Shown here in pieces: positions 1 to 52,011 of a stretch of DNA of 64,000 nt. The DNA comes from Oculina patagonica. Its lineage: Eukaryota. How positions within the stretch are numbered: position 1 is the first letter of the stretch; each line of letters opens with the position of its first letter. The DNA lies in NCBI RefSeq assembly GCF_052425735.1, contig NC_135759.1:31310001-31374000 (forward strand), read 5' to 3'. The notes under the pieces are model-generated. The model had not been told where the DNA came from and did not search any database. It saw only the letters and a program-made list of their open reading frames with translations. The position numbers and the translations under genes were made by a program.

Positions 1-92
1 CATGGTGTGGTATGACATGGCAAGGCATGGCAGGGTATGACACGGCATAATATTCCTAAAACGAGACAATAAATGCAATGAAATTCACTCAC

Positions 93-677
93 CATAACAC
101 GAGGCCTCCCGAATATTTTCTACCATAGCATTTACTTCCGAAAACGACTGTGAAGAGACCACATGATCAGCGTCAGGATCACTGGCGATAACATTCAGCT
201 CATTTGTGTTTATTCTTGGACCAATTCCTATAACAAAGATGCTAACTCCCTCACGCCGAAGCACCTTAGAAGGCTCGATGACGGAGGCCGTCCCTTTGCC
301 CGCTCTTCCGTCAGTAAGAAGAACAAGCACTCTCGGAACACCCAATTCTATAGGTCTGACACCGTTATCAGGGTTATCAAACAGGTTTGTATGGGCCTCC
401 AAGAGGGCTAAGTCAGTGCGTGTACCACCACCCGCTTCGTATGGTATCGCTCCAATTGCATTAAGGACGTCTTGCTTCTTGACATAAGTGTTAAAACTAA
501 ACACTATCTTTGAGACATGGTGGTATATGATGAGAGCCACTCGAGTGCCATGAGGATATCCAATGTTGAAATATTCGCAAACCCTTATGACGAACTGGAG
601 TCCAAGTTGAAAGTTTTTTGCCTTGACGCTCATAGAAGAATCCAATACGAAGACCAGGTCGATTGGATTTTGACAAT
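93..677 (-). other. VWA domain exon of gene A
   Basis: DLVFVLDSSMS (MIDAS DxSxS), GGTRT, VLVLLTDG, IFVIGIG. Symmetric phase-1 exon. Confidence 0.95.
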
Positions 678-10849: not shown

Positions 10850-11266
10850 CTATATTGAAACACATAGGGCATTAATAAAAAAATTCATCTGCATAGACAT
10901 GCCATGGGAATGTAACGGAACTTGTTGATTTTTGTCTTGCTTCAAGTTTAGGTCGAGCTCAATCAAATTTCTATCCATAGGTGGCAGAGCTTGGCAGCAA
11001 GTATGATTATTAATCGGGCGTGGCCGATTTAAGGTTTACCCTTTGGTCGTCCTAGAGCGTAGTCTCCTGGCGCGGCCAAAAAGACGGGGATAGCTCAGGG
11101 TTGCTACAAAACCGCTACGGGTGACGCATACCGCAATGGTTTTCATTTTAGTTTTGACAGGAAATCGTTGCAGGCACACTTGGTCGACTTTTGGGTTAAT
11201 GTGTAATCAGGTTGTGTTTTTTTGCTTCGGCGGAAGGACAGAGAAAAAAGCTTACGGGGCAAAGTA

Positions 11267-12286
11267 CAGTATGGGGCCCAGTTCTCGGCCACTTTTGACG
11301 TAAACTTGTATTTCTTACCTCAGAAGAACCGCAGGAACTTGAAATTTCTCCCAGAGCTAGCTACATTATTCAGCTTTTTGGTGTAAAGCTATCGACCGGT
11401 CAAAAATTAATTTGCCCGAGCAATAATAAAAATAAAAGCTCCATTTGTGGGCCCAGTTCTCGGCCACCTTGTGCGTAATTATCTGTAAAAAAATGCTCAA
11501 TTAATTTTCACAGTCATAAAATCACTCTGTAAACCTATTTATACTTTATCGATCCCAAATTATTTTTATGATGCTTTGTTTTACTTTAGAAAAGAAGGAT
11601 TTTAACGCGCCTAGTTGCCTATGTGCAGGTTCTGGCAAAACCGCATTGTGTGACCCGTGCATTTAGATGGTTTATTTTGCAGTGAAAAGGTCTTGAAAGA
11701 TTTAGGTGTTGTAGAAATAATAGACAAGACAAGAGTCAGCTCAAAACTTAGAGATAAGATTGAACTTTATTTTTAAAACATTTATTTCTTTCATTCTGGC
11801 AGCAGCAGATGAAATTATATTAAAAACCAAGCGCTAAGCTGTGATAGCGAGCAGGGTGGCCGAGAACTGGCAAATACGCAAACGTCGCAAGAAAAAATTT
11901 CGAAGTAAATTAAGACCAAAAAATACAACGGTTCAACGAAAAGTTAACTAAAGCAGAAAGCTGAATTATTCTACGTTTCACATGCCAAAAATTAGCTCGT
12001 ATGGTGGGGGCTTTTGGATAAAATACGAATTTAACTACATCCATGAATTTGGAGCCGTAAACAAACAACTTTTTCGGGAATGCAAATTCACCTACCTCCG
12101 CGTAAACTCGACGTGTGAGCTTTCTATATCGAATTGAACGATCAAACTGAAGATACTTAAAGCTCATGAATCAGTCTATCGTTTGAAGGAAATACCTTTT
12201 TCTTTTGATTCAACTTGAGTATGAAAAACGCGTTAAACACAAAGTGGCCGAGAACTGGACCCGGCCGAGAACTGGGCCCCATTCTG
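11267..12286. mobile_element. TA-flanked MITE (Tc1/mariner-like) with subterminal repeats
   Basis: TIR CAG(T/A)ATGGGGCCCAGTTCTCGGCC, TA TSD, internal copies of CCAGTTCTCGGCC at both ends. Confidence 0.9.
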
Positions 12287-13847
12287 TACTGATATTCACC
12301 ATTGTGAAATTGCACTTACTTTGACAAGTAAAAGTTATTTTTGTAAATGAAAAAGGTAACGTCATTGATGTCACGCAGTGTTTTTTTTAGCAAACTAGAT
12401 GGTTTGCTGGTTTCTGACTATGAATGGGGGTGTGATCTTGCGGTATATTTTTTGAGCCTGACTCCGCCGTAAAACTTTTTTTTTATTTAGCAAGAACTGT
12501 GTCGATTTTCATTTCTGAACAATTGGTCGTCAAGTCGTTTGTCACAAAGAGTAGAATGTTTGTACAGCATGTTTTGGAATTATTTTAGATTCGGTTAGTA
12601 AGACGCTTCTGAAGACCTGAGCAAAACATTGGGAATGTACAGTATTAATAGGAACTTGAATGGAATTTTTCACAAGTTGGATAAAGGTATCAACTGAAAA
12701 AAATGGAATTCAAAATGAGGCTTGGATTTTGTTGTAATTAAATTTTATCGCGGATTGGATGCATAATATCACGGCTTTGAAAGTCTTCAAATAATTAGAA
12801 AGGTTCCTTTCTTCCTTTTGATCTTATTTTTATTTTCATGTATTGATTATTCGAAAGTGGTTTTCGTTGATACGAAAAAAAAACGGGTTTTCACTGAATT
12901 GCTTGAAGTATTTTTAGACGTGATAATATTGGCTTAATCAAATTACATTGTGCACGAAATATTTGTTATTCTTTTGTCTTGAAACTTTGAGGAAATTGAA
13001 ATTTTTGTTTGACAGTAGTGTATGAAAGGCATTTTATAGAACTGAATAAAAAATAAGAAACATTGATGAAGGTTATTTCAAAGATTTATTTTGCCTGATT
13101 TTGAAGGGTTTCAGGAGTTTTAAAGAGTGCTGGTAAACGGCTGTATGTTGTTTGTGATTACGGATCTTATTTAGTTTCGAACGCTCTAATTTTTGAAAGG
13201 TTAAAACAGGTTAAAACCGGGCGGTTTCATGAGTTTTTTGGGTAGAAAGGTACGGTGGTGGTAAAAAAAAATGTTTAGAAAGGAATGACTGTAGTAGCAC
13301 GTAAGTCGGAGGTTTGCGTGAGTCACGGGGTATAGTATGCGTGAGCTGGATTTCCGGCGTCATAACGGCATGTTTTGTTTACTGAAAGATACACTCGACG
13401 TTTAGTTAGCTTAGTCGGCTTGGGAAACTATTTTAAAAATGAATGTTGTAATAGTTAATTAATAGTAATCTAGAATTAACCCACTCTCGATTGGAGTCTG
13501 TTCTGGATTCGCGCTACCTTTTCGCCGCGAAGGAATTTTGTAAAATTTCGCTAGTGGAAAGAGGTACTGTAAGAACAGTATCAATAACTCAAAAGGAGGA
13601 ACTTCTTTGTAGCTCTGAATTAAGACGTATGATAAAATTTTAGAATAAGAAACTTTCGATATATGGTTTTCATATTGTTTTTGTCAATTTCCTTTTGTGG
13701 CAGATTTTTTGAGAATCAGCTTTTCTTTCGTGTGATGAAAGACACAGGACAGAACGAGAGGTGGATGAGAAAGATGCCGAAGATGAATAGGCACCGAAAA
13801 ACGACAAGAACCGTCAAGGACTTATCTTTAGAGGGCGGGGAGTTTTG

Positions 13848-14840
13848 GGATACTGTATTTCGAGGACTGGACTGGACTAGTAAAACGCGGACTAGTAAAA
13901 CGCGGACTTGTAAAACGCGGACTAGTATAACGCGGACTAGTAAAACGCGGACTTGTAAGACGCGGACTAGTAAAACGCGGACTCAGGTAAAACGCGGACT
14001 TGTAAAAGGCGGACTAGTAAAACGCGGACTAGTAAAACGCGGACTTGTAAAACGAGGACTAGTAAAACGCGGACTTGTAAAACGCGGACTTGTAAAACGA
14101 GGGCTTGTTAAGCACGGACTTGTAGAACGCGGACTTGTAAAACAAGCGCTTGTAAATCGGATAAAACTAAACGGTTTAGCGAGCGAAACAATTTGTGTTT
14201 GAAGCTCTTGTGTGTTTCTTCGACGGCATATTTCTAGCTTTTTTGAGCACTCTATGGTCTGTTTTAGCGTGGAGATGTTTTTGCAGTATAGCACATGTTC
14301 GTTCTGCAAACCCCTACTAAAACAACGGGATTGATGCTATGAGTTGTGTGCATATGTTTCTTTCTTTCCACTACTTGACGTCTGTTGAGTGCAGTCGTTT
14401 GTATTGCTCGCACGAGGTAGAACGGGGCCCGTCCAGAAATCAACAGTCAATCGTAAATAAAGGTGACGGGCCTACACGACTCCTACGTTCGTGACATTAG
14501 AATATTTGCCGTTAAATGTTTAAATTCGGTCTTTCGACCTTATTTGCTTCTGACTTCTTTCTGAGGGTACTGTTTTAATTTGGGGGCAGTATGTGGTAAA
14601 TAAAGGTGACGGGCCTACACGACTCCTACGTTCGTGACATTAGAACATTTGCCGTTATATGTTCAAATTCGGTCTTTCGACCTTATTTGCTTCTGACTTC
14701 TTTCTGAGGTTACTGTTTTTTTGAGACATTATGTATTGAAGAGAGCCGTAAGATGATTGTGGCCAAGGAATTCGAAGTGTCTAGAGGCGTTTTACAAGTC
14801 CGCGTTTTACTAGTCCGCGTTTTACTAGTCCAGTCCAGTC
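13848..14840. mobile_element. Non-autonomous DNA element with a 15-bp tandem array in its inverted ends
   Basis: (GGACTAGTAAAACGC)n array at about 13874-14155 mirrored at 14789-14840. Internal direct repeat of about 125 bp at about 14453 and 14596. Confidence 0.8.
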
Positions 14841-16343: not shown

Positions 16344-19300
16344 TTAAAACCTTCTTGCTATCAATTTTACCTCCTCATCTTCGATTTCAATAGCCTGATG
16401 TTCGTCAAACGGTGTCTGCGAAGAGCTTTTCCATTCCCAAGCGGCAAGAATCAGCTCTCGAACTTCAGGATTTAAAAGCACATAAAATAGGAAGAAACCA
16501 AAACCCTGTTGACAAAACGACAGCAACGAATGTTCATTGTTAGCATCGTCTATCCATTCTTTATGCAATGTCATTAATTAAATGATTTATCCCCTAAACT
16601 CCATGTACATGAATAATCGTCGATATGTTTTCGCGTAATATTTTATGTGAGGTTGACCCCATAGAACAAAATAAAGTACTTAAATAGAACAGAAAAAATC
16701 TCTCTCGTTAGTCTTTATAACCGCAGTCTACGTAGCAAAGTCGTTAAAGTGCTTAAAAGATGAATAGGAAAAGAACAGAGCATTACATTACCTGCAGTGC
16801 GTTAAATATTGTGAAAAAGGTATGGTAGACATCGCGATCGATGTTTAAGGACAGTGATCCCAGAAGCCAAGTTAGAATGACTGTGATTGTTATGCAAACA
16901 ACTGTTTGTAAACCAGACCTGTTGAAAAAGTTATGTCAGTAAGTATAAGGATACGTAAAAGTGAAGAAAGGTGTGGCTAAAATTGTTTTGTTTCTTGGAT
17001 GAAAAGGAAAAAAAATCTCCTAGAATCTACCGATATTTTCTGACATAAAATCATTTTGGTCGTGCTCTATTGAGACCAACCAACTGGTTTTCTTTTTCCC
17101 TTTTTGCGGAAGCCTCTCTCAAACGGGTATTACCACTGGTAACCAAAGCGTACTATGAGAGTTTGTATGGATGTACTAAGAAGGCTTGTATGGATTTGAA
17201 ATAAAGTTGAGAAAAATATCTCTTTTTACCGGTGAAAAGTTATAATGAAACTTTAAACCTTACCTGGTGTCACGTTTTTGTATTTCTAGTGCTTTAGAAA
17301 GTCATACGCGCGATTTTCGTCTAACCGTCTGTTGCGTACTAAAAGAAAGACAAGGTAGGAAAGCAAATTCGAAAGGCGAACGCAGGCCTCTTCAAAAAAC
17401 TCGCTAAAGAAGCTCAAAACCAGACGTAGCTTAATCTTTTTACTTCACGATCCAAGAGCGATAAATATTCCATCTTTCTGTGCAATTGAATTGTATTCAA
17501 GTCGAAGTTTGGAGCTAAAAACTTCATTTGAATTCACAACTTCGGCACAAATCGGTCGCCATTAGGCCGTGAAATCCAAATGCGAGCACCTAGCTAACGG
17601 TCGAGCCTAGGGCGAGTACAAAATCCACCCCATCCGCGGGAGACAGAGGAGACCTCTTGTAAGCACCATCTCATGCTCACTACAACCACTATAAGTTAAT
17701 TTTTGTAACGGCGGGTAAACCCAAACGTCAGCAACCCATTCAATCAACATTCAAATCTGTGCACCGTTCCCAACGTTACAAAAATTAACTTATAGTGGTT
17801 GTAGTGAGCATGAGACGGTGCTTACAAGAGGTCTCCTCTGTCTCCCCCGGATGGGGTGGATTTTGTACTCGCCCTAGGCTCGACCGTTAGCTAGGTGCTC
17901 GCATTTGGATTTCACGGCCTAATGGCGACCGATTTGTGCCGAAGTTGTGAATTCAAATGAAGTTTTTAGCTCCAAACTTCGACTTGAATACAATTCAATT
18001 ACACAGAAAGATGGAATATTTATCGCTCTTGGATCGTGAAGTAAAAAGATCAAGCTACGTCTGGTTTTGAGCTTCTTTAGCGAGTTTTTTGAAGAGGCCT
18101 GCGTTCGCCTTTCGAATTTGCTTTCCTACCTTGTCTTTCTTTTAGTACGCAACAGACGGTTAGACGAAAATCGCGCGTATGACTTTCTAAAGCACTAGAA
18201 ATACAAAAACGTGACACCAGGTAAGGTTTAAAGTTTCATTATAACTTTTCACCGGTAAAAAGAGATATTTTTCTCAACTTTATTTCAAATCCATACAAAC
18301 TCTTATAGTACATCCATACAAACTCTCATAGTACGCTTTGGTTACCTGTGGTATTACCTTGTCATAAAGCCAACTAAAAGTGGGCGTACAGCGGTTGTCA
18401 AAAATCAGACCGCGGGCGCACAAGGACAACATCTATGCCACTAACAGCCTGAAGAAGAATAGTCAAACTATTCAAACGTCGCTGTTTTAGATATATTTTA
18501 ACGTCGAAAAATCCACATTTGATTTCATTTAGCTAATGAGCTAAACAGAGAGTCAATATTTATTTTTGGAGAAATGGCCCAAAAATTTAAAACTTGTCTT
18601 TACGTCAACAATTTTGCCGACCAGCTCCTGACACGTCTTGTTAGGTCCATGTCAATGTGGCTCGACTGTATCACACATCCCACTGTAGTAGTATTTTTGG
18701 CTCATTCTCGATGTAAAAAACCTGTGAAACTCACCAGTGTCTTAAAACAAATAACGACCAAGAGAACAAAGAACCTTGAAACAATATAGAGTAGGAAAAC
18801 AACTGATCCAAAACCAAGAAAAAAAATTCACAAGTTTTTACATCGAGGTAAACCTGTAAAATGTCCATTAATATAACTTTTGATAGATACTTACTTGATG
18901 ACACTTTTCTTGTTCTCATTTTCCCCTGCGTCGCCGGACTTACGGTAAGAAATCAAAGCTTTCACCAGCAACACAATGAGTATTAATTGCACCTGAAAAG
19001 AGGAGCAACAATTTAATACACGAATTTCTGTCTGATATTTTTATATATACTGTGGTATTTTTGGAACACAACAAATATGTAGGATAGAACACTAAAGAGA
19101 TGCACACTCTTTTTGATAGGCATCACAAACTGTCTTTATTGATAAAAGTTCATTAAAGCAGACATTCTGTCAAATATATAAAGTAATTTGAAAGGGCCAA
19201 TAGTAATTCAGTCATATATGAAGTAGTTTTTAAACAATTCCTGCGTTCAATCCCGGACATAAGTTCAAGACATTGTTAATAGGAAGACGCCCCTTGTCCC

Positions 19301-22300
19301 CTTTTTGGCAACCCAAGTAATGAAAGAGAGCGTTTTCACCTAAAACAAAGAGAATTACGCAAAGAGAAACTAGGGAGGATACATCTGTAAAAAAACAAAC
19401 AAACAAACAAAATAAAATACATCAAAAACAAAATACATTAGGCTGTAAACAAGAACTATATCTTTGGGATCCGATGTTTTATTACTACCAGGACGCATTT
19501 GATAAAGTTGGTAAATGCAAATGGAAAACATATTACAAGGAGGTTTCTTAATAGGAACTAGTGTTAAGTATCTACTCACCATTCCTAACGTAATAATGGG
19601 TGTTGCCACGGACCAGCTTAAAGCGTCGGTGAATGAGATCCAGCAGCTGATGAAAGTAATCAGAAAGAAAAATTTTGCACCACCACCATAACACAACAAC
19701 AACTAAAATGGTAGAGTATTGTTGAAAATGATTTCTATCTTCCTTGAAAAAAATTGAGAGGGAATGCAATCGACAACGATATTCGTAACAAGTAAAAAAA
19801 AAAACGAGAATCATAAAAACTAAAAGTTAGAATTAATAAATCTGATAATAAACCACGCCCATAAACATACAATAACAATTACACTGTTTTATTGCAAAAA
19901 GCTCTGTCAATGGCCAATTCTCTCTTTATGACACGCCTGCAGCGAATAAAGGTAGTTGTACTCACCGTTGCTAAGACTCGCGAGAGCTTTGCTGAATGCA
20001 ACTACCATGACTCCCTGCAGGCGCGTCTTAAAGAGGGAACTGGACATTTGTACGTCTTCCAGTGGGCTTTTTATTCATATAAATATAGTATTGTAACGTG
20101 CTAAAATGAGAAAGGCTAACTTACTGTGGATGTTCTTTGTACGACTCATACTTGGAGACAAGAATAAGCACAGCAAAAAGGGGTAAACCTGTACAAAACA
20201 AGGCAACAAAATATTGTATGGTGCATGTAAACAATACTGAAGTACCATAATAGCGGAGCTGTACAGCGGCCCGCAGGGCCGCAGAGCAGAGCCCCATACG
20301 CATGAAAGAAGGAACACTGTCGAAATGAGTTTTCATTGTCAACATGGATAGCGGCATGGTTCGCGGGCGCGTCCGTACGGCGTACGGCGTACGGAGTCGC
20401 GCAACATGGCCGCCATAGTTTGATGGTAGAAATAGTGAAGCAAGAAGGCCGTATAAAGGCGGCCTGTAAAATTTAAAGAGGTTTGAAAAGAAAAACAAGA
20501 AGCAATGAAACAAAATGTGGCTGAAAATTACGTGTAGAAAGTAATCGACCGCCAAAAAAGTGGACATTGAGAGCCATAATCGATCGATGACTTTCGTGTC
20601 TATCTGTAAAGCCAGCATCGTACATGAAGGAGCATTCGAAATCTAAATCGGGTTGATATGATAAATTAACAAACCATTTTATTGCTACGGGGTAAAAAAA
20701 AAAGGAAAAAAGAAAAAAAAAACTTGACCCTCTGGGATTTGAACTCACGACCTCCGGATCCTCAGACTGGCACCTTACCGATTGAGCTAATCCGACAGAC
20801 TCTGTGACGCACGTTGAATATATCCTATATCAATGTAATAGATATTGTGGAGTCTACTAAACTGCTGCGAAACTATAACAGGATCGCGAAACTATTTTCT
20901 ATTGCTAGAAAGCAGATAATTTACTGTACTCTAAAGTAATTTTTCGTGCCATGAGTAATGATTTTGCCCCGCTTTAAGATTATTATTTTTGTCGTACTGC
21001 TGACATTCAGTATAACCGTGAGCTATTTAAATTTGTGTCGCACCTATAAACCGCCATAAACATTAGTACTTTGGCCGCTTATTCACTAGAATGAAAACAT
21101 TGTAAGCTCCAGTGAAAATTAAATAAATGGGGAGCTCCGCTTTTAGGCTTGCCTAAATCTATATAATATGATTATATAACTTCGTTAAACTTGACATAAA
21201 TGTATTTTTCACCAATTTTCATTGCTTTAAATCGTTAATAACTCCACTCACCCCATGCACCTCCGTAATACAGTTTCATTATCATTTTCCGCTTCACCTC
21301 GCTCTCACGCTTCCTGGTAAAGGAAAACAGGTAAAGAGCCTGGACAATGAGCCAACAGAGGGTGACGAGAGAGAGATAGTTCATGGTAATGGCCACAACA
21401 GCACAGGCAATCTGAAACAAACAAGGTTGGTAGAACAAGGTTTGATACTTAAGATAATAATATTATCAAAAATCCATTTTCCTATCAAATCACGAATTCT
21501 ACATCATCATATTGATAAAATCTACCTCATTAGTGTTCTTTATAAAAGGAATATCAATAACATGGTAGGATACTTGCAAACTAATTTTCTGCTTATTTTC
21601 TCCACTTACAAAAAAGCGTTGTTGTGAACTTTTTAGCAACGCGCTGCTTTGAGAATATTTACAATTTACCTTGACCATCTTAAGTAATGATAATTATCAA
21701 AATGGCTTACTTTTTGGCAAAAATATGGCAACATCCGCCAAGAGGATTTTGGGTCAAATTCCATATTCAAAAACAGTTTTCTATCGACTTGGTGTTCGTT
21801 ATGAAAATGATCTATAGCAAGGTTATACAAAGTATATAAACACCTACGGTATTATCTCTAGCATCTGCTCCGGCCAGGAATAAAAGCTGCGATGCTAACA
21901 CACAAAAGGCTTGACTCATTTGCATATCTCGTTCAAATCGTCTGTCCCTGTATAAAGAAAATGATTTAAAATTTGACCAATATATAAATATTCTGCTGTT
22001 GCTCATCACATTAAAGGTAAGTAATCAAGGTCCGGAAAGTACAACATTTTTACTTTCATTCTTCATTAAGTCTTCCTTGCATAGAGGGTCTCCAATTTGT
22101 GTTTCACTCTGCGGCTCATCTAGAGATATGTGCTCTATATCAAAGAAATCCTAGATTTACGTCTCCTAAAACCTTCCAGGAGTTTCACATTTTGTCGTTA
22201 ATAACTCTTGCGCCCACTCGATGCGCGACAACGGAATCTACTGAATTACAACCCGTCATTTCTGTTACTGTTGTTATCATTTTTTAAATTAAAGTATGCC

Positions 22301-25300
22301 AAATGCCTAACGGTTTGAAGAAGGCACGTTTATAAATGCATTTGATAAATTGCTCAATTTTTTTTAAACAGCGTTTTTTTTTCTTGCCAATAACTTAAAC
22401 ACAAAACAAAGAAACGAACGAAGAAACGTCCGTACAGATGATTTATTTACCTCATTTCCTGACGATTTTTGTCACTTTTCTCCTTTTCCTTGTCAGATGG
22501 CTTCTCCTCGGTGCGATTCTCGGTTTCACCTTCCAAGATTAAGAATGTGAAGCAAGGACACATGACTGCCATGACCTTACGCCTTGTGATTTTTGATTTC
22601 ATCCGGAGCAGGAAACTAACTTTTTCCTTCTCGTTATTTCTTACTTCAGTTTCGTTCTTTTCAATATCAACTTGTTCCAATTGGTTTTCAACCTTTGAAG
22701 TCTTCTCTACCTTCTTGTTAGATGAAGATGGCTGCCATTGAAAGCAACAGATTGTTTGTTTTTCTGATTCGCTATCGATGGCTTGCAACTCTTTTGCATG
22801 TTGCGGTAACTCCTCTAAGCCGTTTGAAACCCTTTCTTTTTGAATTTCTTTCGATGTCACAACAGATACTGAGACACTTGTACTCCTAACCTTTCGTTTG
22901 ACACCAGAATGGCTTCCTTCATTACCTGGTGCTTCTGACGTTACTGTCTGTTCTATTAATGTGTCTTCTCTATGTAAGTCATAAATCATCGAAGAAACCA
23001 AACTGCCGTGACGCGATAATTTTCTGTGCCGATCTTCACTTGATTTCGGCAACGTGGCAGTTTTCTTGCTGTGTACCATTTCCTTGTTTGCAATTTTTTG
23101 TCCCCGCTATGACGTTAGCCTTTTTCTCAGCAACAAAAATCGCACGAGTTTTTTCTTTCTTAAGAAGCTTGGTCTCTGCACCAGAGACATTTTTTGATGT
23201 TCCACAAGTTGATCCTTGCTCACAGTCCTCTAATAAAGGAGTGAGACTAGAACGATTTTTAGTGCCCTGATACTTTTCATCATCGTCTCCTTCAAACGCC
23301 TTGTTATCTGCCGAATTATTGTTTTTCGCCTCCTCTTTCTTCTTTTTCTTTTTAATCTTTGTTGAGCCTTTGATTTGAAATTCCTTTGCACATCTGCAAT
23401 GAAGAGCATGATTTATCATTAGTGACATTATTTAGCACGATGCACGCCCCACCTTTACTGAAGAATTTAAAAAGAAAACGATTTTTCTTCTAGGTTTAGG
23501 ATCACAGTTAAACCCCGGATTTAACTATTCTGGACACCCATAGACCCTTAACTCGTACAATCATTGAGCATGCTATCAATTTAAAAAAATGAAAATAATG
23601 GGAACATTTTCCAGATAAGTTACTTTAAAAGTTACCTTGTTCACATCCGTCCACGTACATCATCAAATGTTATTTTTAATGGAACACACTTTAAGACGAT
23701 AGTTTTAGCATTAACCAGTTACCGTTAGATATTTGCAGGTACAGAGAAAAATAAAGATCCATGCAAACAAGTGCATGCTTTGTTTGGAATTGAAGCTGTC
23801 CCTTACTTTCCAGAAAACACAATACTTACGACAGTGTAACCACAGCTGCTACTGTTGCTGTTGTACCGATGGTTGCTACAGCCGCTCCAGCGTAAACCTT
23901 CTTAGGAATCGGAAAGGTGGTATCGTTTCTCTCTGTGTTTTCCGTGTTGTTCTGAGTGGGAATCTGAAAGCAAAATTTAAATGATGCATTTACATTAAAA
24001 ATTCATTTAAGAGAACGTGGAGCAAAGCAGGTTGATTACTGTTGAAGTAAATGAAATGACAATTTATCAAGGTCTTTGGGAAAAACACGTCAACAACGTG
24101 TTCAGGAAACGAAAGCCCGAAAAGGAGTGTAGAATGGAGTGGGTCGTGGGCGAGCGGTTTTTTCTAGCTTCTCCTTTATGTGAGTACTCTAAAGAAGCAA
24201 TTCTGTTTTTTTTTTAAAGAAAATAGTTTAACATGTCACAGCAACTTTATGATGGAATACAAAAAAAAAAACAAACAAACCTGTTTTTCTACCGTGACAT
24301 TTGTTCTAATGAGATCCTTGAAGAGCGTCAAATTGAACGTGTTTGTCTTGTTAAATCCTTCGATTGAAACGTAGAACCACCTGCTGGTGCACGTTTTCAC
24401 ATAAATGATCAATCCTTCCTCACCGAATTCGTCGCTAGACACAATGAGAGGCTTGGTACAACCTCCATTAATAGTAGCATTACAAAAAGTACTACTTTCA
24501 AGTTCATCCAATTCCCAAATACGATCAGTGTCAGCAAGCTTGTTGCTTTCACGCGGTGCACAGGATCCAAGGTTAAGGCGACTATTTCGTGGGTTCCTGT
24601 TGCTCGTCGAAGCTGAGATATCAGTCATTCCACGGGTTGTTTGCAGAAATATAGTCTTTATCCCTGTCTTGTTTAGTAAGTCGTATTTATAATATTTTAT
24701 GGCATTTTGCTCCACACTGGACATCACCTCTCTTTCTTCCTCCAGCACAGCGGGTTCTTGAAAGTTATGGACGAAAAAGAGAAGATGTAGATGTAACATA
24801 ACAGAAATGCCTTTGACGTTAAGTAATAACCTTAAAGGTGCTCTCATACGAAGGGGCATGTTACAGGAACACGATGCAGCAACATGTAGCAGAGGCAAAA
24901 TCACAATGTGTGCAAAATCAAAAATTGTACACTGGCACAATAGAAAGGAAGCAGCGACATCTTACAGCGAAACGTACCCTGAAAAGAGTCAGCATTCACG
25001 CGCGAACACGCCGCAACATGTCCCGCTACAATTTATTTGTGATATGTGTACAGGTTACATGTTACTGCGATATGTACCCCCTTCGTATCTTAAAAAAAAT
25101 CATGTTTGCAGGAGGAAAAGCTGCTCGTGCACGTGCACGTGCACGTGCTTGACCAGTTAAGTTCAATAAAACGCAACGTTTACGGTACGGCACGGCACGG
25201 AATGGCACGGTATGACATGGCATTGACATGGGGTGGCATAGTTTCTCTGAAACGAGATGATATATGCCATGAACGATACTCACCATAACACGAGGCCTCC

Positions 25301-28300
25301 TGCATATTTCCTACCATGGCATTTACTTCCGAAAAGGACTTTGAAGAAGCTACATGATCAGCGTCAGGGTCACTGGCAATGATGTTTAGCTCATTCGTAT
25401 TGATGTTCGGACCAATTCCAATAACAAAGATGCTAACCCCGTCTTGCCGGAGCACTCTAGAAGGCTCGATGACGGAGGCTGTTCCTGAGCTCGCTCTTCC
25501 GTCAGTGAGAAGAACAAGCACTCTTGGAACACCCAACTCTATAGGTCTCACGCCGTTATCAGGGTTGCCAAACAAGTTTGTATGGGCCTCTAAGAGAGCT
25601 AAGTCAGTGCGTGTACCACCCGCTTGGTATGGAATCGTTCCAATTGCATTAAGGACGTCTTGCTTCTTGACATAAGTGTTAAAACTAAACATTATATTTG
25701 GGACGTTATGGTATCTGATGAGAGCCACTCGAGTGCCATAAGGATATCCAATGTTGAAATATTCGCACACCCTTACGATAAACTGTAGTCCAAGTTGAAA
25801 GTTTGTTACCGTGACGCTGCCAGAGGAATCCAATACAAAAGCCAAGTCGATCGGATTTTGACAATCTGTGGGAAAATGGAACATGGTAAATAATCCTATT
25901 GTTTTAGTCAAATGTTCGGACTGACTTATTCCACTTAATTGATATAACTTGTCTCCTACGAATTGAGTAATACTCGATCCAAAAGAAGATTAAGGTTCGT
26001 TCTTTACGAAATAAACATTTTATAGTTATTCTGCCGAGCAGTCTCACTCAAGAATTCTTTATAATGGCATCTACAACGTACAAGAAGTAGACGCTGTCTC
26101 TTAATGTCGCATATGTCAGTTTCTACTGCTATCAAATGCTGTTACTACTGCTATCAAATCCTGCAAGGGAAGCTTGTCTAAAAAAATTCCTGCAAGCGGT
26201 TATGCCTAAAAAAATGCATGCAACGAATGTAAATTGTCCTACAAGCCCCATTCGGTTATTTCTAATGGTCCGTCCCTAAATACAAGTCATTACCAAGGCA
26301 GCATGTGATTGGTAAAGTTCCAGGACATCCTGTTGCAGAATATTCTCCCTTACAGCTTGTCACCAATTTACACGTTCCTTTTCTTTTGCCAACTGAACAG
26401 CTTGGACCTTTCCCTTTTGACGGACATGGAAGACCAAGTACCTGTTAATACATGATGAACATAGATATTGTAAACGTGGCTTCAATGCAAGATTGTACAA
26501 CATCCATATTCCCTTTAGTATTTTTTTTTGATTTTATCATCATCATCATCATTTATTAGCCACTTCAGAATTAAACATACAAAATAACTTAAAAAGATAG
26601 GGCGAGGAGACCTCCAAGAAACCACAAGGCTTATAGAGCAGGCCACCTCGGGTTGGCTACAACGATGAATCTTTCCGGTTTATCGGCGACGGTCATAAAA
26701 AACGTTATACCTATCGTTTAAATGTTCCTGCCTTTTCCCATTTTTTACCATTGTGGTAGTAATAAAAAACCCTCCAATTCGTGAATTCTTAAAGACCTGG
26801 AATCTACAGTCCGGAGAATTCTACCCAAATCGATTGCGGATTCCGTGCACCCGACAGGCTCCCGATTTGCACACTTGTATGGTTTGCCTAAGACCCACAT
26901 AGAACGTCTGGCTATGCGCCCCATTTTATCTGCCACACAAACGTACAATTATGGATTGGCGAAATGGCTAGAGGAGAAGCTACAACCTCTGTCCTACAAC
27001 CGGTACACAATGACCGACACCTTTGAGTTTGCAAACGAAATTCGCGAGTTAAAGATCAAAGATGGTGATGTCCTATTATTGTCGTATGATGTTTCCTCGC
27101 TATTTACCAATGTGCCGCTGGAGGAAACCATACAGATACTGGCAGACAAAGCGTTTACAAACAACTGGTTCAATGAAACACACCACTTAAACCTCAGCAG
27201 ATCGGACCTCATAGACCCGTCCTCAGAGCATCCACCAAAGACCAGCTGTTCCAATTCAATGGGCAATTGTATGAACAGACCGATGGCGTCGCCATGGGTT
27301 CGCCACTGGGACCAATGTTGGCAAACGTTTTCATGGGTTACATCGAAGAAACTCTTGAGCGTGAAGGTAAAATGCCTTCATTCTACAAAAGATTATACCG
27401 TCGACGACACCTTAACCATCATGCCTGATCTAAAATCAGCGGCTACGTTTCTTCAAGTCCTCAATAATTGCCATCCATCAGTAAATTTCACCATGGAAAC
27501 AGAGAAAGACCGAGTGCTTCCCTTTCTTGGTATGCAACTGCTGAACAGAGCCCCTAACATCGAGACCAAGGTTTACATAAAACCTACGAACACAGGTCTT
27601 TTGCTCCACTACCAGAGTCATGTTGATATTCGATATAAACGAGGGCTCCTGAAAACCATGCTTGATCGTGCATATCGCTTATCATCGTGTTGGTCATATT
27701 TTTCCGAAAAATGTGACCGATTGAAAGCACTGTTCTCCCGGCTGAAATATCCGGAAAAGCTCATCAATACCACCGTCCGTTGTTTGGTTAGTTCAAAGAC
27801 CGAAGATCGACAACCAATATAAATACCAGCCACTGGCGAGAGTCCAACAGTTCGAATAGTACTACCATTCAAAGATCAGGATTCTGCAGATTTTGTACGG
27901 AAACAACTCAACGAACTAAGCCAGAAAACTCGCACAGTCATTCAACCAGTTTTGTTAGCAACAAAATCGAACAAAAGCTTAAAGTACAAGAGAAAAACCA
28001 CCTATTGTAAACCAGTAGTGTGTTGTATACAGATTTCAATGCGACTTGTGTGATGCAAGTTATGTAGGATATACACTGAGGCATTTACACCAGCGCGTGG
28101 ACGAGCACAAGAACAATACATCATCTATTGGCAAGCATAATAGAGACAAGCACTGTATTGTCCCGAAAGTCCTTGACAAACAGTTTCATGTCATCAAGAA
28201 GTGCAAGAATAAGTTTGATTATGGCGAGTATTTAGTGCATGAAATGCTACTAATCAGAGAATTGCCACCATCTCTAAATGTCCAATCAGACTCAATCCGA

Positions 28301-31300
28301 GCCAAACTATTTGCGTGACATTGCATATTTTAAATAATAATAATGGATTGATGTGTGGAGAGAAAGAACTCAGAAAAGAAATTCTGAGTTCACAGATGGG
28401 ACTCGAACCCACGACCTTCCGTACACTAGTCGGACGCTCTAACCACTGAGCTACTGTGAACTCTAATGGTGAGCAGTAGTCATTGCATATTTTATTATGT
28501 TAATCTTAAGCGAACTTTTTCTGAAAGTTTATTCTTTTCATTTTTTGTTAACTTGATAATGGAGTCATGACGACTCCGAAACGTCGTTCGTTATTATCGT
28601 TTATTTTTACTTGCTTGTGTAATTCTTGTTTTAGGGTTAAAATAATCTCTTGTGACTGTCTTCAAAATAGAAACGGTTAATTTTACCGTGAGCGTATGTC
28701 GCCAGTATTGGAACAATTTTTCGATACCAGCTGTACTTTGCTGAACATTGATAGATAATTGCGCGAAGCCGTATTCAGTTCCATTGCAGAAGTTCCCTAA
28801 GTTCCCAGTGGGCGAGCTGCTGTTGTCAGCTGAGCTATATCCATTCGTCCATAACCACGCAGCAACATGGAATCCAACGGAAGGAAACGCCACAATCTCT
28901 GGCTGACCTGCAAGTGCATTATAAAAAATAATTCATCTAAATACTACCCATTTCAATTGATAAGAGAGAAGACGAAAGGAAAAATAGCGGAAGTTTTCGT
29001 GGTGTCAAATAAACGGACAGCGGTAAGCCTTTATTTTGGGTTGCCGTACGAAAGCTAGCTAGACCAATGAAAGACGACAAATCGAAACGGTGTATTGGCT
29101 GTTTACAATGCGGGATATTGCCGTTTTTGCACTTTTTATCATCTTGTTAAAAAAGGAAATATTGAAATGAAAGTCAACAAGTTCAGACATACAGATGGTT
29201 CTTAATGGTCCAATCAAGTCTGTCAAACAGAAACTAGTGTCAATTCAATCTCCCTAAACAATGATTTAAAGAGATAAGGATTGGACTGGTTTGAAAAATC
29301 ATAATTTGGTTTTTGTTGGCCTCAATGAAAATCATGCTTAGGCCGACTTGTATGAAAAGGTAACTGGTCACTGTTTGGAAAACCTCTTTTTCAATAGCAG
29401 AATTGACGTGCTATATATTTCATTGCCACCTTAAGGTTTTGGTATCATGTAAAAATTAAGGCAGGATTGACCAAAAACCACGTCTGTTTAGTAATATTTA
29501 AATAGGTAATGATATATTTAAGTGTATACTTACGGATAATGTTGTTATTAATCGAAGATTTTGCAAGTTGGTACATGTGTTTTCCAATCAGAGGCAGAAA
29601 TCCTCGACTGATGTACTTGCGTGCATCAGCCTCTTTAGTATTTCCCAAGTTTTCTTTTCCTATGTATTCCTGTCCATCAGAGCTCTCCTCAGAAAAATTC
29701 ATTCCTGATGTTTGATATAATATCTAAGGAAAGAGAGAGTACTGTTAATGTGCTAGTTGATTATTTATCTGTGGTAAACAAAAGAAGTTCAGCATTACTT
29801 TTGATTGTGGCAAACATATGACTCCACGTTAACTGAATGGAACATTGAAGTGGAATACACTAATAAACCAAACCATTCAGACCGTCGTGCCTTCTTGCGG
29901 ATGCTTTGTTTCTCAGAAATAAAACATAGATCTTTAATCAGAAGGGAAACTGTAATGGAAATACGAAGAACTTTGCATAGGTATTTTCGAGACGCTGCCA
30001 TGTCTAGATCATAGGAGTATTAAAAATTGAAGGGTGCATTCCATACAATGGTTGATAATGTTTATTATGAACGATAGGAACTTATAGGGAAGGAAAGAAA
30101 CCAAAACGAACTAAACAAATAAAGTAATATGGATAAATTTGAAAATTTCCTGTTCTCAAATTCATCAACAGCTGAGCTTGAAATCATGAAGGTGCATATC
30201 CTTTGGATACTATCCAAAATATATGCACCTTTATAGTATACTGTGGAACCTCGATTTAACGAACCTCTATATCGCGAAGTCCTCGATATAACAAAAGATA
30301 TTCTTCGCCTCAGTAATAGTAAAATATATGGAAAGGTACCTCGATTTAAAGAAACCTCGTTATAGCGAACATATTTTGCCAGTCTCTTGGCCCTTCGTTA
30401 TACCGAGGTTCCACTGTACTACAGTTATGGGTGCGTAAGAAGCAGCTTAAAATTTTTCTTTAAACTCACTTGTGCAGTAAATGCTGCTATTTCTTGTCTG
30501 TTCGTGATCCCAGCCTCACTCAGTGCTTGCATATAAAAAGGATATAATGCCCTTGTCCTTGTTGTATCCCCAACCATCTTCAGGTAAGAATCCAGAGAAA
30601 CATTGATGTTTTGCGGGATGTTAGGAACTATTGTGCTATCCAAAATACAGCAAACAGTGTTTTGGTCCGTGAGGGTTGAATTTCTTAAGGTGGCTCCTGG
30701 GCAGTCTCTAGCTTCCATGTAGTAACCACGGAAATATGGAGAGTACTTTGAGTAACACTTTAGGCAGTCGATTTTTTCTGTAGCGAAAAAGAAGAAAACA
30801 ATTTTCATAAGCGCTTTACCTTTCACCGGTGTGAAACATAATTAAACAATTGCTTCAACTTTGAAAGAACCTTGTTTGAAGATCCCTAATCTATCCAATT
30901 TAGCACAAAGTGTATATCAAAAAAATTGTAATAATGATTAGGCAAATCTGTCTGAAGCGGTTCTCTTACTTAGAGGTGGTATTTATTAAACAAATAATTT
31001 AGTTTTTGTTTAATTTATGGATTGCGCCGCAGTAGGGAAGAATATTCCTTTGTCAACTGGATTGAAGCTAATTGCAAAATGTGAATTAATTCGCGACGGC
31101 GGCCGCCGCCGTGTAACAAACGACCCAAAATGTCCCATCCATAAGTTTGTAAATCGGCAGCACGAGAAAAAAGCTCATCCATACCAACTGAATACAATTC
31201 GTTAAGTTAAACCAAGTCAAAAAGAACCGAAAATCAGTGAAAACCAACTGAAAGTTTTAAATTTTACATGCGGACTTTTCAATGATAAACAATAACAGTA

Positions 31301-32363
31301 CAATGAAACTTCAGCAAACAGATCCCTCTGCAAAATCAACAACAAGCGTTCTTTTACCCTTCTTCCCTTTTGAAGCGGCATTCGGCATTTGGATCTTGTC
31401 ACATCTATCACAGATAGCTATATCTAGGGTCAACTGTGTGTGTCTTGTTTGGTTTTATTAGTGCATGAAAAAGAGGTAAACAATGATTTTGTGGTTTATT
31501 TGTTTTGGTGCCAGTGCGCCGTTTCTTTCACAAAATTTTATTTTTTATTCCGAAATAGTCCACAAACTTGAAATGGGTAAGAAAAGACTAATAAGCGAGC
31601 CCTGTTTTGTTTATAACTTCCTATTTTCCGCCTCTCACTTTGCCTAACAGCAGGTTCTCTATTGTTTGAAGTTTCCATGGTGGTTTCACAGTAGGAATAA
31701 ATTAAACAAATGTAAGAAAGAATCTACAAGAACACACTAAAAGACCTATTGGAGTTCACTAACAAGAATAAAGTAAACGAACACATTAGTATGAGTTGTT
31801 AAGGCATAATGACAATGATGTTAGTATAATTAAAAAATGTTTCAGGCTCCTTGTCATACTTTATACACAGTCAAGTTTGTTAGCAAAGTTTTAGAAGCAT
31901 AATAGCAATATTAGCCGTGTCTGCAAAAGCAGGCATGGCTTACATTCTTCAGGTGTAGGTAAAGGAAAAGTTTCAATTAGAAACTTTTTTGAAAGGCTAG
32001 TTATGAAAATAATGGAAATCACCCAACTATCTTCCCTCCCATTTCCTATGTCTGTCGTTGACAACAGCACAAATTCCTAATTTCCATTGGTCTAGTCAAG
32101 TACATTAACTTTTTAGCAGAACTTAGTTTGGCATGGTCGCCGCGTTTATTTAAATGTTTTCTTACTGTCTGGCATCCCATCGCCTCCGTGTTATCTTCCC
32201 TCTAGCTCTTGCGTCAATATTGTGTCAATCGTTTTGTACCAAAATTGCCATTTTTGTCCTGTTTTTGAACTCGATTTACCTCTCATAAAACGTTAGAAAT
32301 ATGTCTCTAGTGCTTACCTTGCAAAAGGAACAGTACCATGAAAAGAATGGTTCTCGTCGCCAT
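16344..32363 (-). CDS. Gene B: GAIN-less adhesion-GPCR-type 7TM receptor with SP, GH19-like, Cys, VWA and PPC-like ectodomain and a large ICL1 exon (one apparent +1 frameshift)
   Basis: Exons 32318-32363, 30470-30777, 29534-29723, 28687-28907, 26294-26441, 25284-25865, 24281-24756, 23830-23963 (TM1), 22451-23393 (ICL1 insert), 21848-21947 (TM2), 21252-21411 (TM3 IACAVVAITMNYLSLVTLCWLIVQALYL), 20125-20188, 19580-19646 (HCWIS), 18895-18992, 16792-16918 (TWLLG..FTIFNALQ), 16371/16344-16505 (GFGFFLFYVLLNPEVR). Phases are consistent throughout except for one extra base inside 22451-23393. Confidence 0.85.
17135..18349. mobile_element. Foldback element: near-perfect inverted arms of about 576 bp with a 63-bp spacer
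   Basis: Arms 17135-17710 and 17774-18349. GGTATTACC occurs at 17126-17134 and 18350-18358 (possible 9-bp TSD, MULE/foldback-like). Confidence 0.92.
20247..21164 (+). mobile_element. Helentron/HINE-like non-autonomous element carrying a tRNA-like cassette
   Basis: Sub-terminal IR AGCGGAGCT...AGCTCCGCT, 3' hairpin TTTAGGC-TT-GCCTAAA, GTACGGC microrepeat. tRNA-like A/B boxes at 20725-20800 on the minus strand. Confidence 0.6.
25284..25865 (-). other. VWA domain exon of gene B
   Basis: IDLAFVLDSSGSV, GGTRT, LLTDG: intact MIDAS. 582-nt phase-1/1 exon. Confidence 0.95.
28333..28480 (-). mobile_element. tRNA-derived SINE fragment inserted in the Penelope 3' region
   Basis: A box TAGCTCAGTGG and B box GGTTCGAGTCC on the minus strand. 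14-bp TSD CATTGCATATTTTA at 28319-28332 and 28481-28494. Confidence 0.85.
28552..28586 (+). ncRNA. Candidate variant minimal hammerhead ribozyme at the Penelope 3' end
   Basis: CTTGATAAT-GGAGTC-ATGAC-GACTCC-GAAAC: a CUGA-like core, a stem II hairpin and GAAA. Penelope-like elements are known to carry small hammerhead variants. Confidence 0.5.
28687..30777 (-). other. GH19-like pseudo-chitinase domain of gene B
   Basis: AGITNRQEIAAFTAQ-ILYQTSGMNFSEE...YIGKENLGN...SRGFLPLIGKHMY...AAWLW. Carries the same degenerate catalytic residues as gene A. Confidence 0.85.
30241..30416. mobile_element. Tigger-like MITE
   Basis: C(T)GTGGAACCTCG...CGAGGTTCCACTG flanked by TA. Absent from the gene A intron. 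Confidence 0.85.
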
Positions 32364-36678: not shown

Positions 36679-39600
36679 TCAAGCGTTTACATTTGATTCG
36701 TTGGTTTCTTCTTGTAAGGGTTCTATCGCTGTATTAAGTTTTCCCTTGTTGTTCTGTTTCGGGCTTTTGTTTGTGACTCTTTGGTGCTTCCTCTTTTTAT
36801 TGACTGGAATCGTGACGGGAGGCAATTTAACTTTTGCAGACCCTTGGCTGGGTTCCCTGGAAAGCCAAGCTGGCGATGGGCATCGCGGCTCACTGTTAGT
36901 GCCATTAGGTTTGACGACTGCTTCTTCAGCCGAGTAGTGGTGACCGTTCTCTTCAGATCGGAGACTGGGATTAGCAGTAACACCATGCAACCGGCTGTTA
37001 GTGGTGTCATCTGAGAGCGACATCATGTTCACATCCTTAAAAATATATTAAAAAAATAATGATAAACAATCAGACGGCTAGCCTATCGACCATTAATGTA
37101 CCCCAAACAAACCGATCACACAGAACGCGCTACTTTCAACGTCTACTCATTGCCGCAATAATTAAACCTTTTCTGAGTGACCATAATACAAATGTAGGGA
37201 CATCATCGCATAACAAGGAAAACTAAAAATGTCCTTACTGGACGATTTTGCAAGTTTTGTGCCAAATTAAAACCTTCTGTTAAAGGGGCAGTGTCACGAA
37301 TGAAGTCTTCTAAGTTCTTGTGTAAACAATGCTAGAATTATGAACATGCACTCGCGGATCAACAAAATAACCTTTGAAGAACTAAGGAATAAGGCATAAA
37401 ACCATTCTCCAAGAAGTGAAAAACAGTTATCAATGGTTCTTAAGTAATTTTCTTCCAAGTAAAACTGTCAAACTTGATGTTTTCAAGTTTCTATAGGCCA
37501 TTTCTTTTCCACCAGCCCGTAACCACACCACTGTTTAACCATTTTAATGACTTGTTAAGTTAAACGTTTAAGCAAGGTCAGGCCACCATAATTGGATTTG
37601 AAGTTAATACCAACACCTTCATTGGAGTTTAAAGTAGCACTAACTATAGTGACACTGCCCCTTTAAACAGAAAATTAACAAATATCGAACATAATTACCG
37701 ATATTGTAGCTCCATGGGATGTTGGAGCAGCAGCATTAGAAGAAGGAGTAAGTGACGAAGGTGAGAAGAAGGTTGTTCGACGGCTGGACCAGATTTCTTT
37801 CTTTCGCTGCATTGCCTTCCGTACCTTAACAAAAGAAGACAGAGTAAGAAAAGTATCCCGTATAACACCTGGGAATTGTTTGAAGTACGAAATCATTTGT
37901 CTATTCCGCGTAATTCTCCCAACAGTTCTTTCATGTGTCTTAAGCCGCCTTCACACGACAGCCAGTTATGGCCAACTCGAGTTGGAAAACTCAAGTTGGT
38001 GTGTGTTAACGACGCAACAACGTAAAACAAGTTGGCCAACTGTTGGCGACAAAAAGAACTTGTCTCTATTCTTACCAACAGTTTGCCAACTGTTGTTGTG
38101 TCGTTTACACACACCAACTTGACTTTGCCAACATGAGTTTGCCAACATGAGTTTGCCAACTTTAGTTTGTCGTTTGAATGCCACTTTAAAGTTCTGTGTA
38201 ATTCCATATTGCTTTTTGCACGTTTTCTGTATCTTTAATACAAAAGTTAAAAAAATGTAAATTAAGTTATCTAGGATACTGACAAAGAACATCAAAATTC
38301 AAGAACAAAGGTCGCATTATCTTACCTCTGAGTTAAGTAAACAGTGAAATATGAAAATGAAGAATCCTTGCAAGGAGTTGAAAATGGCAAAAAGGTACTG
38401 AAACGCGATGGTGTTACTGTCCAGTGCCAAAATACCAAACAGCCACGTAATGCCGAGTAATGGAAAGAGAACGACTGCTGACTTGACTCCAGATCTGATG
38501 ATTTGAAATTAGAAGTAATCAGGTTTATTAGAATGTGGGCGGAGCGTTTCAAGGAGCCTCTAAACAGACCATCCCCAGATGACCTACCAGCAGCCAAAAC
38601 AGTACGAAAACCAAAATGGCTTTCGATCAGAAATGCAAGTAGGTCATTAAGGAATGGGAAGACAATGTGTTCAGATAGCAGGGAATGCAAGCAGCCATGT
38701 ACAAGAAAAACGAAGAATTTTTGACATTTTATAAGAAATTTAATAATGGCATACTTTGCGTGCCTTAAAAAAATCATACCTATCCTACTTACTTGACAAG
38801 GTCAAACTTTGTTGAATGAGAGACTCCATTTGTTTGTATCTTAATGATCTCTCTGATGACCATGACAATGATTACTGTATTAACCTTCAAGACAAAGTGA
38901 TCAAATAATTAAACAGTTTGCCATTTCAGGCACCAGATGCTGGAATTGTAGGCATAATAGTGTCCAGTAATGAGCTCGCACGAGTCCTGGCATGGGGCTC
39001 TGAGTAGCGCTTTTGGGAAGCAAACTAGGACTATAAACGTGTACCAGCAAAATTTTAAGGTCAACTTGACTGAAAAGTCGGCGGTTAACTGGGAGGGACT
39101 CAGAGCAGACTATATTGTGGGGGACTTTCAATTCCTACTCGCTTCATAATACAGCATTGAATAATTTCCGGTAGTGCCACTTTTGTTCGAATGTAGACTC
39201 ACTTGTTCGCTCAGAACATACTTGGAAAACAGAAGTGGATCAGTGATCAGCAGATGATGAGTACCTCAGCAGGAAGTTTTGATGAACACGGAACGTTAAG
39301 CTCTCAATGAAAACTTAAATTAACATTGTAGTTGTAAAGGAATGCCCACACAACCGCTTGGTATTCTTGGTCAGTATATTTCTACTCACCAGGATTATCG
39401 CCAATGCCGGTCCTACAAAAGCATAAATAACTCCGTTTGCCACTGACAGCCAGCAGCTAGGAACAATAAGACGTTCTAAGTTATTTGAATAAGAGATGAC
39501 TAATGGAGAATTTTCTTAATTTAAAAAAATGAGAATAAACGAGAACAAGATTGCTTTGCCCTTATCAAAAATGAAAGATTTGTTTCATCTTATCCGGTTG

Positions 39601-50015: not shown

Positions 50016-50054
<39 letters not shown>

Positions 50055-50181
50055 GAGCTTGGTGTGTGGCGGAAATGACGTCACACGGCCGCCGCGCGCT
50101 GGTGGCCTAATGGTAAGGCGTCGAACTTGAAATCAGATCTTCGGAACTGAGGTCGGGGGTTCGAATCCGGCTAGGGTACGT

Positions 50182-50212
<31 letters not shown>

Positions 50213-51965: not shown

Positions 51966-52011
<46 letters not shown>

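Follow-up and report, generated by a model that had tools for sequence, protein, structure and literature searches.

Corals must tell bacterial and algal partners from pathogens, and few of their microbe-sensing receptors are known. A gene in a 64,000-nt stretch of AT-rich, eukaryotic DNA from Oculina patagonica (herein the window) raises the question of whether a bacterial or phage-type cell-wall hydrolase can become the sensing part of a G-protein-coupled receptor (GPCR) in such an animal. The original prediction, made from the letters of the window, was of a seven-helix receptor carrying a catalytically dead GH19 chitinase/endolysin ectodomain. We find that one expressed, conserved gene on the minus strand, running from 32363 down to 16344, unites a GH19 domain of the endolysin type, missing its acid Glu, with a VWA domain, a β-sandwich, and a 7tm_2 bundle that has no GAIN domain. 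As an observation the prediction is partly confirmed, and its interpretation is partly supported.

Exon chain of the receptor gene

The gene comprises 16 exons, the last of which (exon O) is closed by a stop codon. Logan contigs from four RNA runs (labeled coral or as coded coral species) were aligned to positions 20600 through 26500 and 26290 through 32289, and each exon boundary was compared with the window sequence. Exon 1 and exons K through O were placed by splice sites, reading phase, and conservation. The exons, with transmembrane helices numbered TM1 to TM7, are as follows.

Exon 1, 32318 to 32363, minus strand: ATG and a 15-residue hydrophobic signal-peptide start with a phase-1 donor, read directly from the sequence.
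Exon A, 30470 to 30777, minus strand: cysteine module 1 (5 Cys) and the N-terminal GH19-like part, ending AAFTAQ; RNA joint 29723 to 30470, acceptor located.
Exon B, 29534 to 29723, minus strand: GH19-like core with LYQTSG, SEE, and SRGFLPLIGKHMY; RNA joints.
Exon C, 28687 to 28907, minus strand: C-terminal GH19-like part (AAWLWTNG, NGTEY, GIEKLFQYWRH); RNA joints to exons B and D.
Exon D, 26294 to 26441, minus strand: cysteine module 2 (7 Cys); RNA joints 26443 to 28691 and 25865 to 26294.
Exon E, 25284 to 25865, minus strand: VWA domain with the residues of the metal ion-dependent adhesion site (MIDAS); RNA joints.
Exon F, 24281 to 24756, minus strand: 158-residue β-sandwich, weakly like PPC and collagen-binding domains; RNA joints.
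Exon G, 23830 to 23963, minus strand: N-glycan-rich stalk and TM1; RNA joints, hydropathy.
Exon H, 22451 to 23393, minus strand: ~314 charged, low-complexity residues between TM1 and TM2; RNA joints in four runs.
Exon I, 21848 to 21947, minus strand: end of loop 1 and TM2; RNA joints, phase.
Exon J, 21252 to 21411, minus strand: TM3 and the start of TM4 (GGAWG); RNA joint, Pfam 7tm_2.
Exon K, 20125 to 20188, minus strand: TM4; an RNA loose end maps to 20157 through 20186, splice sites.
Exon L, 19580 to 19646, minus strand: extracellular loop 2 (CW motif) and the start of TM5; splice sites, phase, orthologue matches.
Exon M, 18895 to 18992, minus strand: the remainder of TM5 and intracellular loop 3; splice sites, phase, orthologue matches.
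Exon N, 16792 to 16918, minus strand: TM6 (TWLLG motif); splice sites.
Exon O, 16344 to 16505, minus strand: TM7 (after the QG junction with exon N), a 37-residue tail, and the stop codon; splice site and stop.

Joints within RNA contigs chain 10 of the 16 exons (A through J, 30777 down to 21252), with at least one contig across every intron in that range; the joints read GT..AG on the minus strand (CT..AC on the plus strand), and RNA depth in the introns is zero. A single contig of 3254 nt contains exons G, H, I, and J followed by ~1.9 kb more, and its loose end falls on exon K (next exon start at ~20188). The GH19-like, VWA, and 7tm_2 parts therefore belong to one transcription unit, as had been foreseen, since RNA contigs bridge exon A to exon J. 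In the RNA version, phase is kept across all 16 exons, which encode a product of ~1273 residues, or ~960 if exon H is skipped, with the order signal peptide, cysteine module, GH19-like domain, second cysteine module, VWA domain, β-sandwich, and 7tm_2 seven-helix domain. The predicted phase-consistent splicing from signal peptide to seven-helix bundle holds for this RNA version, which is continuous; in the DNA of the window itself the frame is broken within exon H, as described below.

The same exons recur in the same order, on one strand and over ~15 kb, in five other loci (four from ENA assemblies and one from Desmophyllum pertusum), where the GH19, cysteine, VWA, and β-domain parts, TM1, exon H, and TM2 through TM7 are collinear with those of the window. 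One of the five is only 55% identical in its VWA domain. Exon C is 63 to 82% identical in the orthologues and 45% identical in locus L008, and a signal-peptide mini-exon of the exon 1 type lies 1.2 to 1.7 kb upstream of exon A in loci L005, L006, L007, and L009.

The GH19-like domain and its partner domains

Taken alone, window exon B scores 11.8 bits (E 0.21) against Pfam Glyco_hydro_19, below the cut-off of 25.5; the same exon matches PDB entry 7r6s at E 7.7e-4 (phmmer) and PHROG endolysin families at 2e-4 to 2e-3. Exons A and C, searched singly against the PDB and the PHROGs, gave nothing useful, and a search of NCBIfam profiles gave no match. An exhaustive HMMER search with the VWA exon yielded, for the most part, multi-VWA proteins, along with a single orthologue fragment of 206 aa. 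P0179, an NCBI protein from D. pertusum (Scleractinia) with precomputed Glyco_hydro_19 and VWA assignments, came up in a search with the VWA exon; it aligns to the window protein without gaps over 383 residues, at 77.8% identity. P0179 passes Pfam Glyco_hydro_19 (PF00182) at 32.2 bits against the cut-off of 25.5 and matches 40 solved GH19 entries in the PDB at E values up to 1. The best is 7r6s (1.4e-9), and further top matches are 9hnv, an ancestral GH19 chitinase, and the PWe2 endolysin; the barley entry 2baa scores 2e-5. Its best PHROG match is phage endolysin family 9506 (3.5e-16), as against 1e-3 for a chitinase PHROG. Against bacterial and phage GH19 clusters, which have PG_binding_1 or LysM partners, the ESM Atlas model of P0179 gives template modeling (TM) scores of 0.78 to 0.81 over 173 to 189 residues. 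Judged from these comparisons, GH19 homology is real, and the predicted match to a GH19/lysozyme fold stands. The domain type is closer to the endolysins and to TfcB, the Stenotrophomonas maltophilia protein of entry 7R6S with a GH19-like N-terminal domain, than to the chitinases. Among the three domains for which Pfam matches had been anticipated, VWA (1.4e-41) and 7tm_2 (27.4 bits) are recognized in the window, whereas GH19 is recognized in the orthologue P0179 and falls below threshold on the single window exon.

The motifs quoted in the prediction (YQT, AAFxAQ, SEE, SRGFLPLI/V, and AAWxW) are all present. The window sequence reads AAFTAQ, then LYQTSG with Gln at the general-acid position, SEE, SRGFLPLIGKHMY (LPLV in a tandem paralogue), and AAWLW. 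Three independent PDB alignments place the Gln of LYQTSG on the Glu of HE(S/T) and the second Glu of SEE on the general-base Glu, nine residues after the acid position. Catalytic residues were compared among seven genomic copies (the window gene, its tandem paralogue, and loci L005, L006, L007, L008, and L009). The acid position is Gln in five of them (the window gene, the paralogue, L005, L006, and L007), Thr in L008, and His in L009; two more fragments, P0185 and P0205, also read YQT. The general-base Glu (the second Glu of SEE or TEE) and SRGFLP are invariant in the copies compared, and the triad Ser/Thr of the GRGxxQ(I/L)(S/T) motif is replaced by Ile or Val, or by Leu in L008. The ratio of nonsynonymous to synonymous substitution rates (dN/dS) for the GH19 part is 0.28 against the paralogue, 0.21 against D. 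pertusum, and 0.13 to 0.21 against the distant copies, for which dS is saturated; these values are similar to those of the VWA and seven-helix parts. The predicted loss of the catalytic-acid Glu is thus seen in all seven copies and under purifying selection, a combination that fits a non-catalytic binding module.

Not every substitution speaks for inactivation. TfcB is a bactericidal type IV secretion effector in which Val (Val111) stands for the triad Ser/Thr, within the motif YLPLVGK (PMC11253643). Since a bactericidal protein shares it, the corresponding coral motif FLPLIGK is best taken as a trait common to the TfcB branch and no extra sign of inactivation; SRGFLPLI/V, which had been read as such a sign, is present but loses that meaning. 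By sequence comparison, loss of the acid Glu is the coral-specific change and the sole specific evidence of inactivation. Plant GH19 proteins in which the catalytic Glu is replaced are catalytically inactive and act as lectins or regulators (PMC8547705).

Of the partner domains, VWA (exon E; Pfam 1.4e-41) has an intact MIDAS, with DSSGS, GGTRTD, and LTDG, and cysteine module 2 (exon D) has no Pfam match. The AlphaFold2 (AF2) model of exon F has a mean predicted local distance difference test (pLDDT) score of 68. Foldseek places it closest to the ColH collagen-binding domain (E 4e-3, TM-scores 0.45/0.59), and the best VIA matches are ColG, ColH, and PPC, with Z of 7.7 to 8.2. These Z values lie within the tool's stated background range, so we call exon F PPC-like only tentatively; it has no Pfam match. 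The model does not resemble a GAIN domain. The ectodomain carries 12 N-glycan sequons.

The seven-helix part is recognized through exon J (TM3), whose 27.4 bits exceed the Pfam 7tm_2 cut-off of 20.6, and the third of the D. pertusum gene models at the orthologous locus carries 7tm_2 as well. TM6 and TM7 (exons N and O) are 43% identical (E 7e-10) to an exon of the neighboring gene that scores 43.6 bits for 7tm_2. TM1 and TM3 through TM7 pass a hydropathy scan, and TM2 was assigned from a class-B motif. Against the orthologues, dN/dS of the seven-helix part is 0.11 to 0.36.

A candidate glycan receptor and its alternatives

From these sequence relationships we consider it probable, if by no wide measure, that the gene encodes a class-B (7tm_2, adhesion-like) receptor whose inactivated endolysin-type GH19 ectodomain binds a polymer of N-acetylglucosamine (GlcNAc) or N-acetylmuramic acid (MurNAc). 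A GH19 domain that lacks the general acid and keeps the second Glu and the cleft-lining motifs would bind glycan rather than cut it. The prediction had left chitin and peptidoglycan side by side as ligands. Because the domain lies nearer to phage endolysins (PHROG 9506, 3.5e-16) and TfcB than to chitinases, bacterial peptidoglycan would be the likelier ligand and chitin the less likely one; for TfcB, too, the substrate has been suggested not to be plain chitin and to be peptidoglycan most probably (PMC11253643). The β-sandwich would take the place of the usual GAIN/GPS domain, and occupancy of the ectodomain would be relayed to the bundle without a tethered agonist, with signaling presumably through G proteins. 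Exon H, a large charged insert in intracellular loop 1, may serve as a cytoplasmic scaffold. Such a receptor might conceivably act in immunity, symbiosis, or settlement.

Parts of this arrangement have counterparts in known systems. TfcB, the best sequence match among solved structures, shares with the coral domain an aliphatic residue for the triad Ser/Thr and a second Glu nine residues on; it retains Glu34 as the general acid and is a soluble toxin secreted by bacteria, whereas the coral protein has Gln, Thr, or His at that position and forms the ectodomain of a seven-helix receptor encoded by an intron-rich animal gene. The strongest profile matches are phage GH19 endolysins (PHROG 9506, 181, and 1519; e.g., SPN1S, 4OK7), which are active muramidases with both Glu residues and no VWA or seven-helix context. 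Inactive chitinase-like GH19 proteins of plants (GH19ED groups CHIT 3 and CHIT 4; Urtica dioica-type lectins) have Lys or Ala in place of the catalytic Glu and serve as lectins or regulators (PMC8547705). They are soluble and belong to the chitinase branch, in contrast to the endolysin-like, receptor-fused domain of the coral.

By the same logic, a dead cell-wall hydrolase fold is the sensing ectodomain of a membrane receptor in Drosophila PGRP-LC (among the PGRPs without amidase activity) and in the tobacco chitinase-related receptor kinase CHRK1. These differ in having amidase_2 and GH18 folds and in signaling through a single-pass chain or a kinase rather than a seven-helix bundle. With adhesion GPCRs (class B2), the coral receptor shares 7tm_2, a large modular ectodomain, and the TM6/TM7 motifs of its neighbor, and invertebrate adhesion-type GPCRs are known for varied ectodomains. 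It departs from them in having no GAIN/GPS domain or tethered agonist, a tentatively PPC-like β-sandwich before TM1, and ~314 extra residues in loop 1. Our literature search found no paper on this receptor architecture, in keeping with the claim that no such GPCR had been described. To our knowledge, known peptidoglycan sensors (PGRPs, NODs, and LysM kinases) do not couple directly to G-protein signaling.

Several observations weigh against the proposed receptor. No GAIN/GPS, tethered-agonist, or Stachel motif is seen in the ectodomain, and Pfam GPS is not matched by exon F, exon G, or any of five orthologous exon F sequences, in a test in which the neighboring gene scores 50 bits. The bundle predicted to be of the adhesion-GPCR type is therefore so by its seven-helix sequence and not by its juxtamembrane region. 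The RNA joints cover exons A through J, and a paralogue that is 85 to 90% identical may be the source of some RNA contigs. Our own AF2 model of the GH19 region, built from a shallow alignment, was poor (pLDDT 46). A loop-1 insert of ~314 residues is very unusual for a GPCR. In D. pertusum (L007; MU827780.1, 10001 to 27513) NCBI annotates the locus as three models (397, 547, and 502 aa); the first break lies within the VWA exon, and the second where the exon H orthologue has a frameshift of its own. In locus L006 the exon F orthologue (10878 to 11330) has an in-frame stop, the remainder of the locus being intact. Exon H of the window measures 943 nt, against 942 nt in RNA. The extra base, at 23042, lies outside any homopolymer, is absent from every contig of all four RNA runs, and shifts the frame of the window copy. 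The first of the three D. pertusum models carries the odd name "dendrite reproteinration".

The extra base bears most directly on the alternative that the window copy is a broken or null allele. Because it yields an in-frame TGA at 23038 to 23036, the window's own frame is not continuous through exon H, and the open reading frame (ORF) stops at 820 residues. Unless it is an assembly error, the insertion would truncate any exon H-including product after TM1. Were the base real, the gene would make a single-pass protein of GH19-like, VWA, and β-domains, TM1, and a 118-residue tail, and the receptor role would fall to the paralogue, to other alleles, or to an isoform that skips exon H. Its position outside a homopolymer favors this reading, as does the evidence that copies of this receptor family are sometimes damaged or misassembled, given the D. 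pertusum frameshift and the L006 stop. A word search with the 61 nt spanning 23042 (31-mers) listed no run. Against this reading, the base is missing from all contigs of the four RNA runs, and an assembly indel is just as possible. Beyond it the other frame stays open for 455 codons through TM2 to TM7, with all splice sites intact, and the low dN/dS of the seven-helix part given above points the same way. Three loci (L005, L006, and L009) read straight through their exon H orthologues as continuous ORFs of 327 to 404 residues. We regard a null allele as rather unlikely.

Exon H itself evolves with a dN/dS of ~0.3. As it is in phase 2 at both ends, skipping it keeps the frame and would link TM1 to TM2 by a normal short loop of ~8 residues; the contigs of the four RNA runs show inclusion only, though assembled contigs cannot show that skipping is absent. 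In the window and its orthologues, conserved islands stand amid fast-evolving charged sequence: a polybasic stretch that directly follows TM1, two blocks reading LVSSMI..L.RED and CCF.W, and a hydrophobic CPC segment of 14 residues, ~35 residues before TM2, which may be a lipid-anchored or membrane-dipping element. The CPC segment was considered as the true TM1 and rejected, being only 14 residues long and of a kind to invert the topology of the bundle.

A second alternative, to which we give a similarly low weight, accepts the seven-helix receptor and takes the GH19-like domain as a structural or protein-binding module, for instance for an endogenous matrix or partner protein together with VWA, in a receptor for adhesion or development rather than for microbe sensing. 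Ectodomains of adhesion GPCRs commonly carry adhesion modules, the MIDAS of the VWA domain is intact, and positions that contact substrate in GH19 enzymes have changed (Gln to Pro, Ser/Thr to Ile, and Asn to Met). The same positions are changed in TfcB, however, which is predicted to bind GlcNAc oligomers and peptidoglycan, and the second Glu and the cleft motifs do not vary even among divergent copies, as fits a conserved cleft.

We think it very unlikely that the domain has kept enzymatic activity, as a muramidase or chitinase tethered to the membrane and using a non-canonical acid: although the general-base Glu is invariant and TfcB kills bacteria despite missing its triad Ser/Thr, the acid position varies among Gln, Thr, and His with no single conserved replacement, and replacement of the catalytic Glu marks the inactive plant GH19 proteins. 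Least probable of all is a division into two or three genes, with a GH19-VWA protein, secreted or single-pass, distinct from a seven-helix protein, for which the split NCBI models of L007 and the window stop after TM1 might be cited, because RNA contigs run from exon G through exon H to TM2-TM3 and another 1.9 kb, a protein beginning at TM2 would have six helices only, and the breaks between the D. pertusum models lie inside the VWA exon and at the exon H frameshift.

If the preferred reading of a glycan-binding receptor is true, a GPCR with a pseudo-endolysin ectodomain would couple the cell-wall glycans of microbes directly to G-protein signaling and provide a clear animal case of a bacterial or phage-type hydrolase turned receptor module. 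A bolder version, which we offer tentatively as possible but doubtful, is that stony corals captured a GH19 endolysin or effector domain from bacteria or phage, did away with its general acid, and coupled it to a class-B GPCR that has no GAIN domain. The result would be the first GPCR-type pattern-recognition receptor for peptidoglycan (or a GlcNAc polymer), with a facultative 314-residue loop-1 cassette that tunes signaling.

Tandem paralogue, neighboring receptor gene, and repeats

The receptor family is conserved, expressed, and tandemly duplicated, and it lies beside a receptor with a chitin-binding domain. The second copy in the window is as follows.

Tandem paralogue, 1 to 3557, minus strand: exon 1, cysteine module, GH19-like domain, cysteine module 2, and VWA, truncated by the start of the window.

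By tblastn the paralogue is 75 to 89% identical in protein sequence; its exon 1 lies at 3557, and its GH19-like domain reads YQT, SEE, and LPLV. Both tandem copies appear to be expressed, because two classes of contig map to exon B, with 0 and 19 mismatches. The neighboring receptor gene (36679 to 55757, minus strand) encodes CBM_14 (28.5 bits), GPS (50 bits), and 7tm_2 (43.6 bits), with a weak PA14/GLEYA match and a tethered agonist of the TNFAVLM type. Two adjacent receptor genes therefore carry ectodomain modules related to GlcNAc polymers, CBM_14 in one and the GH19-like domain in the other.

Between the gene and its paralogue, a 179-aa ORF on the plus strand (13663 to 14202) has tandem KTRTS and KRGLV repeats. 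A 325-aa ORF on the plus strand (26845 to 27822), judged by eye to be probably a reverse transcriptase, lies within the 2.2-kb intron that separates exons C and D, and repeat-like RNA contigs map on it at 90 to 95% identity. The intron that separates exons M and N has two identical short ORFs, one on each strand (17267 to 17417 and 18067 to 18217), that form an inverted repeat pair ~650 bp apart, probably a transposon with terminal inverted repeats.

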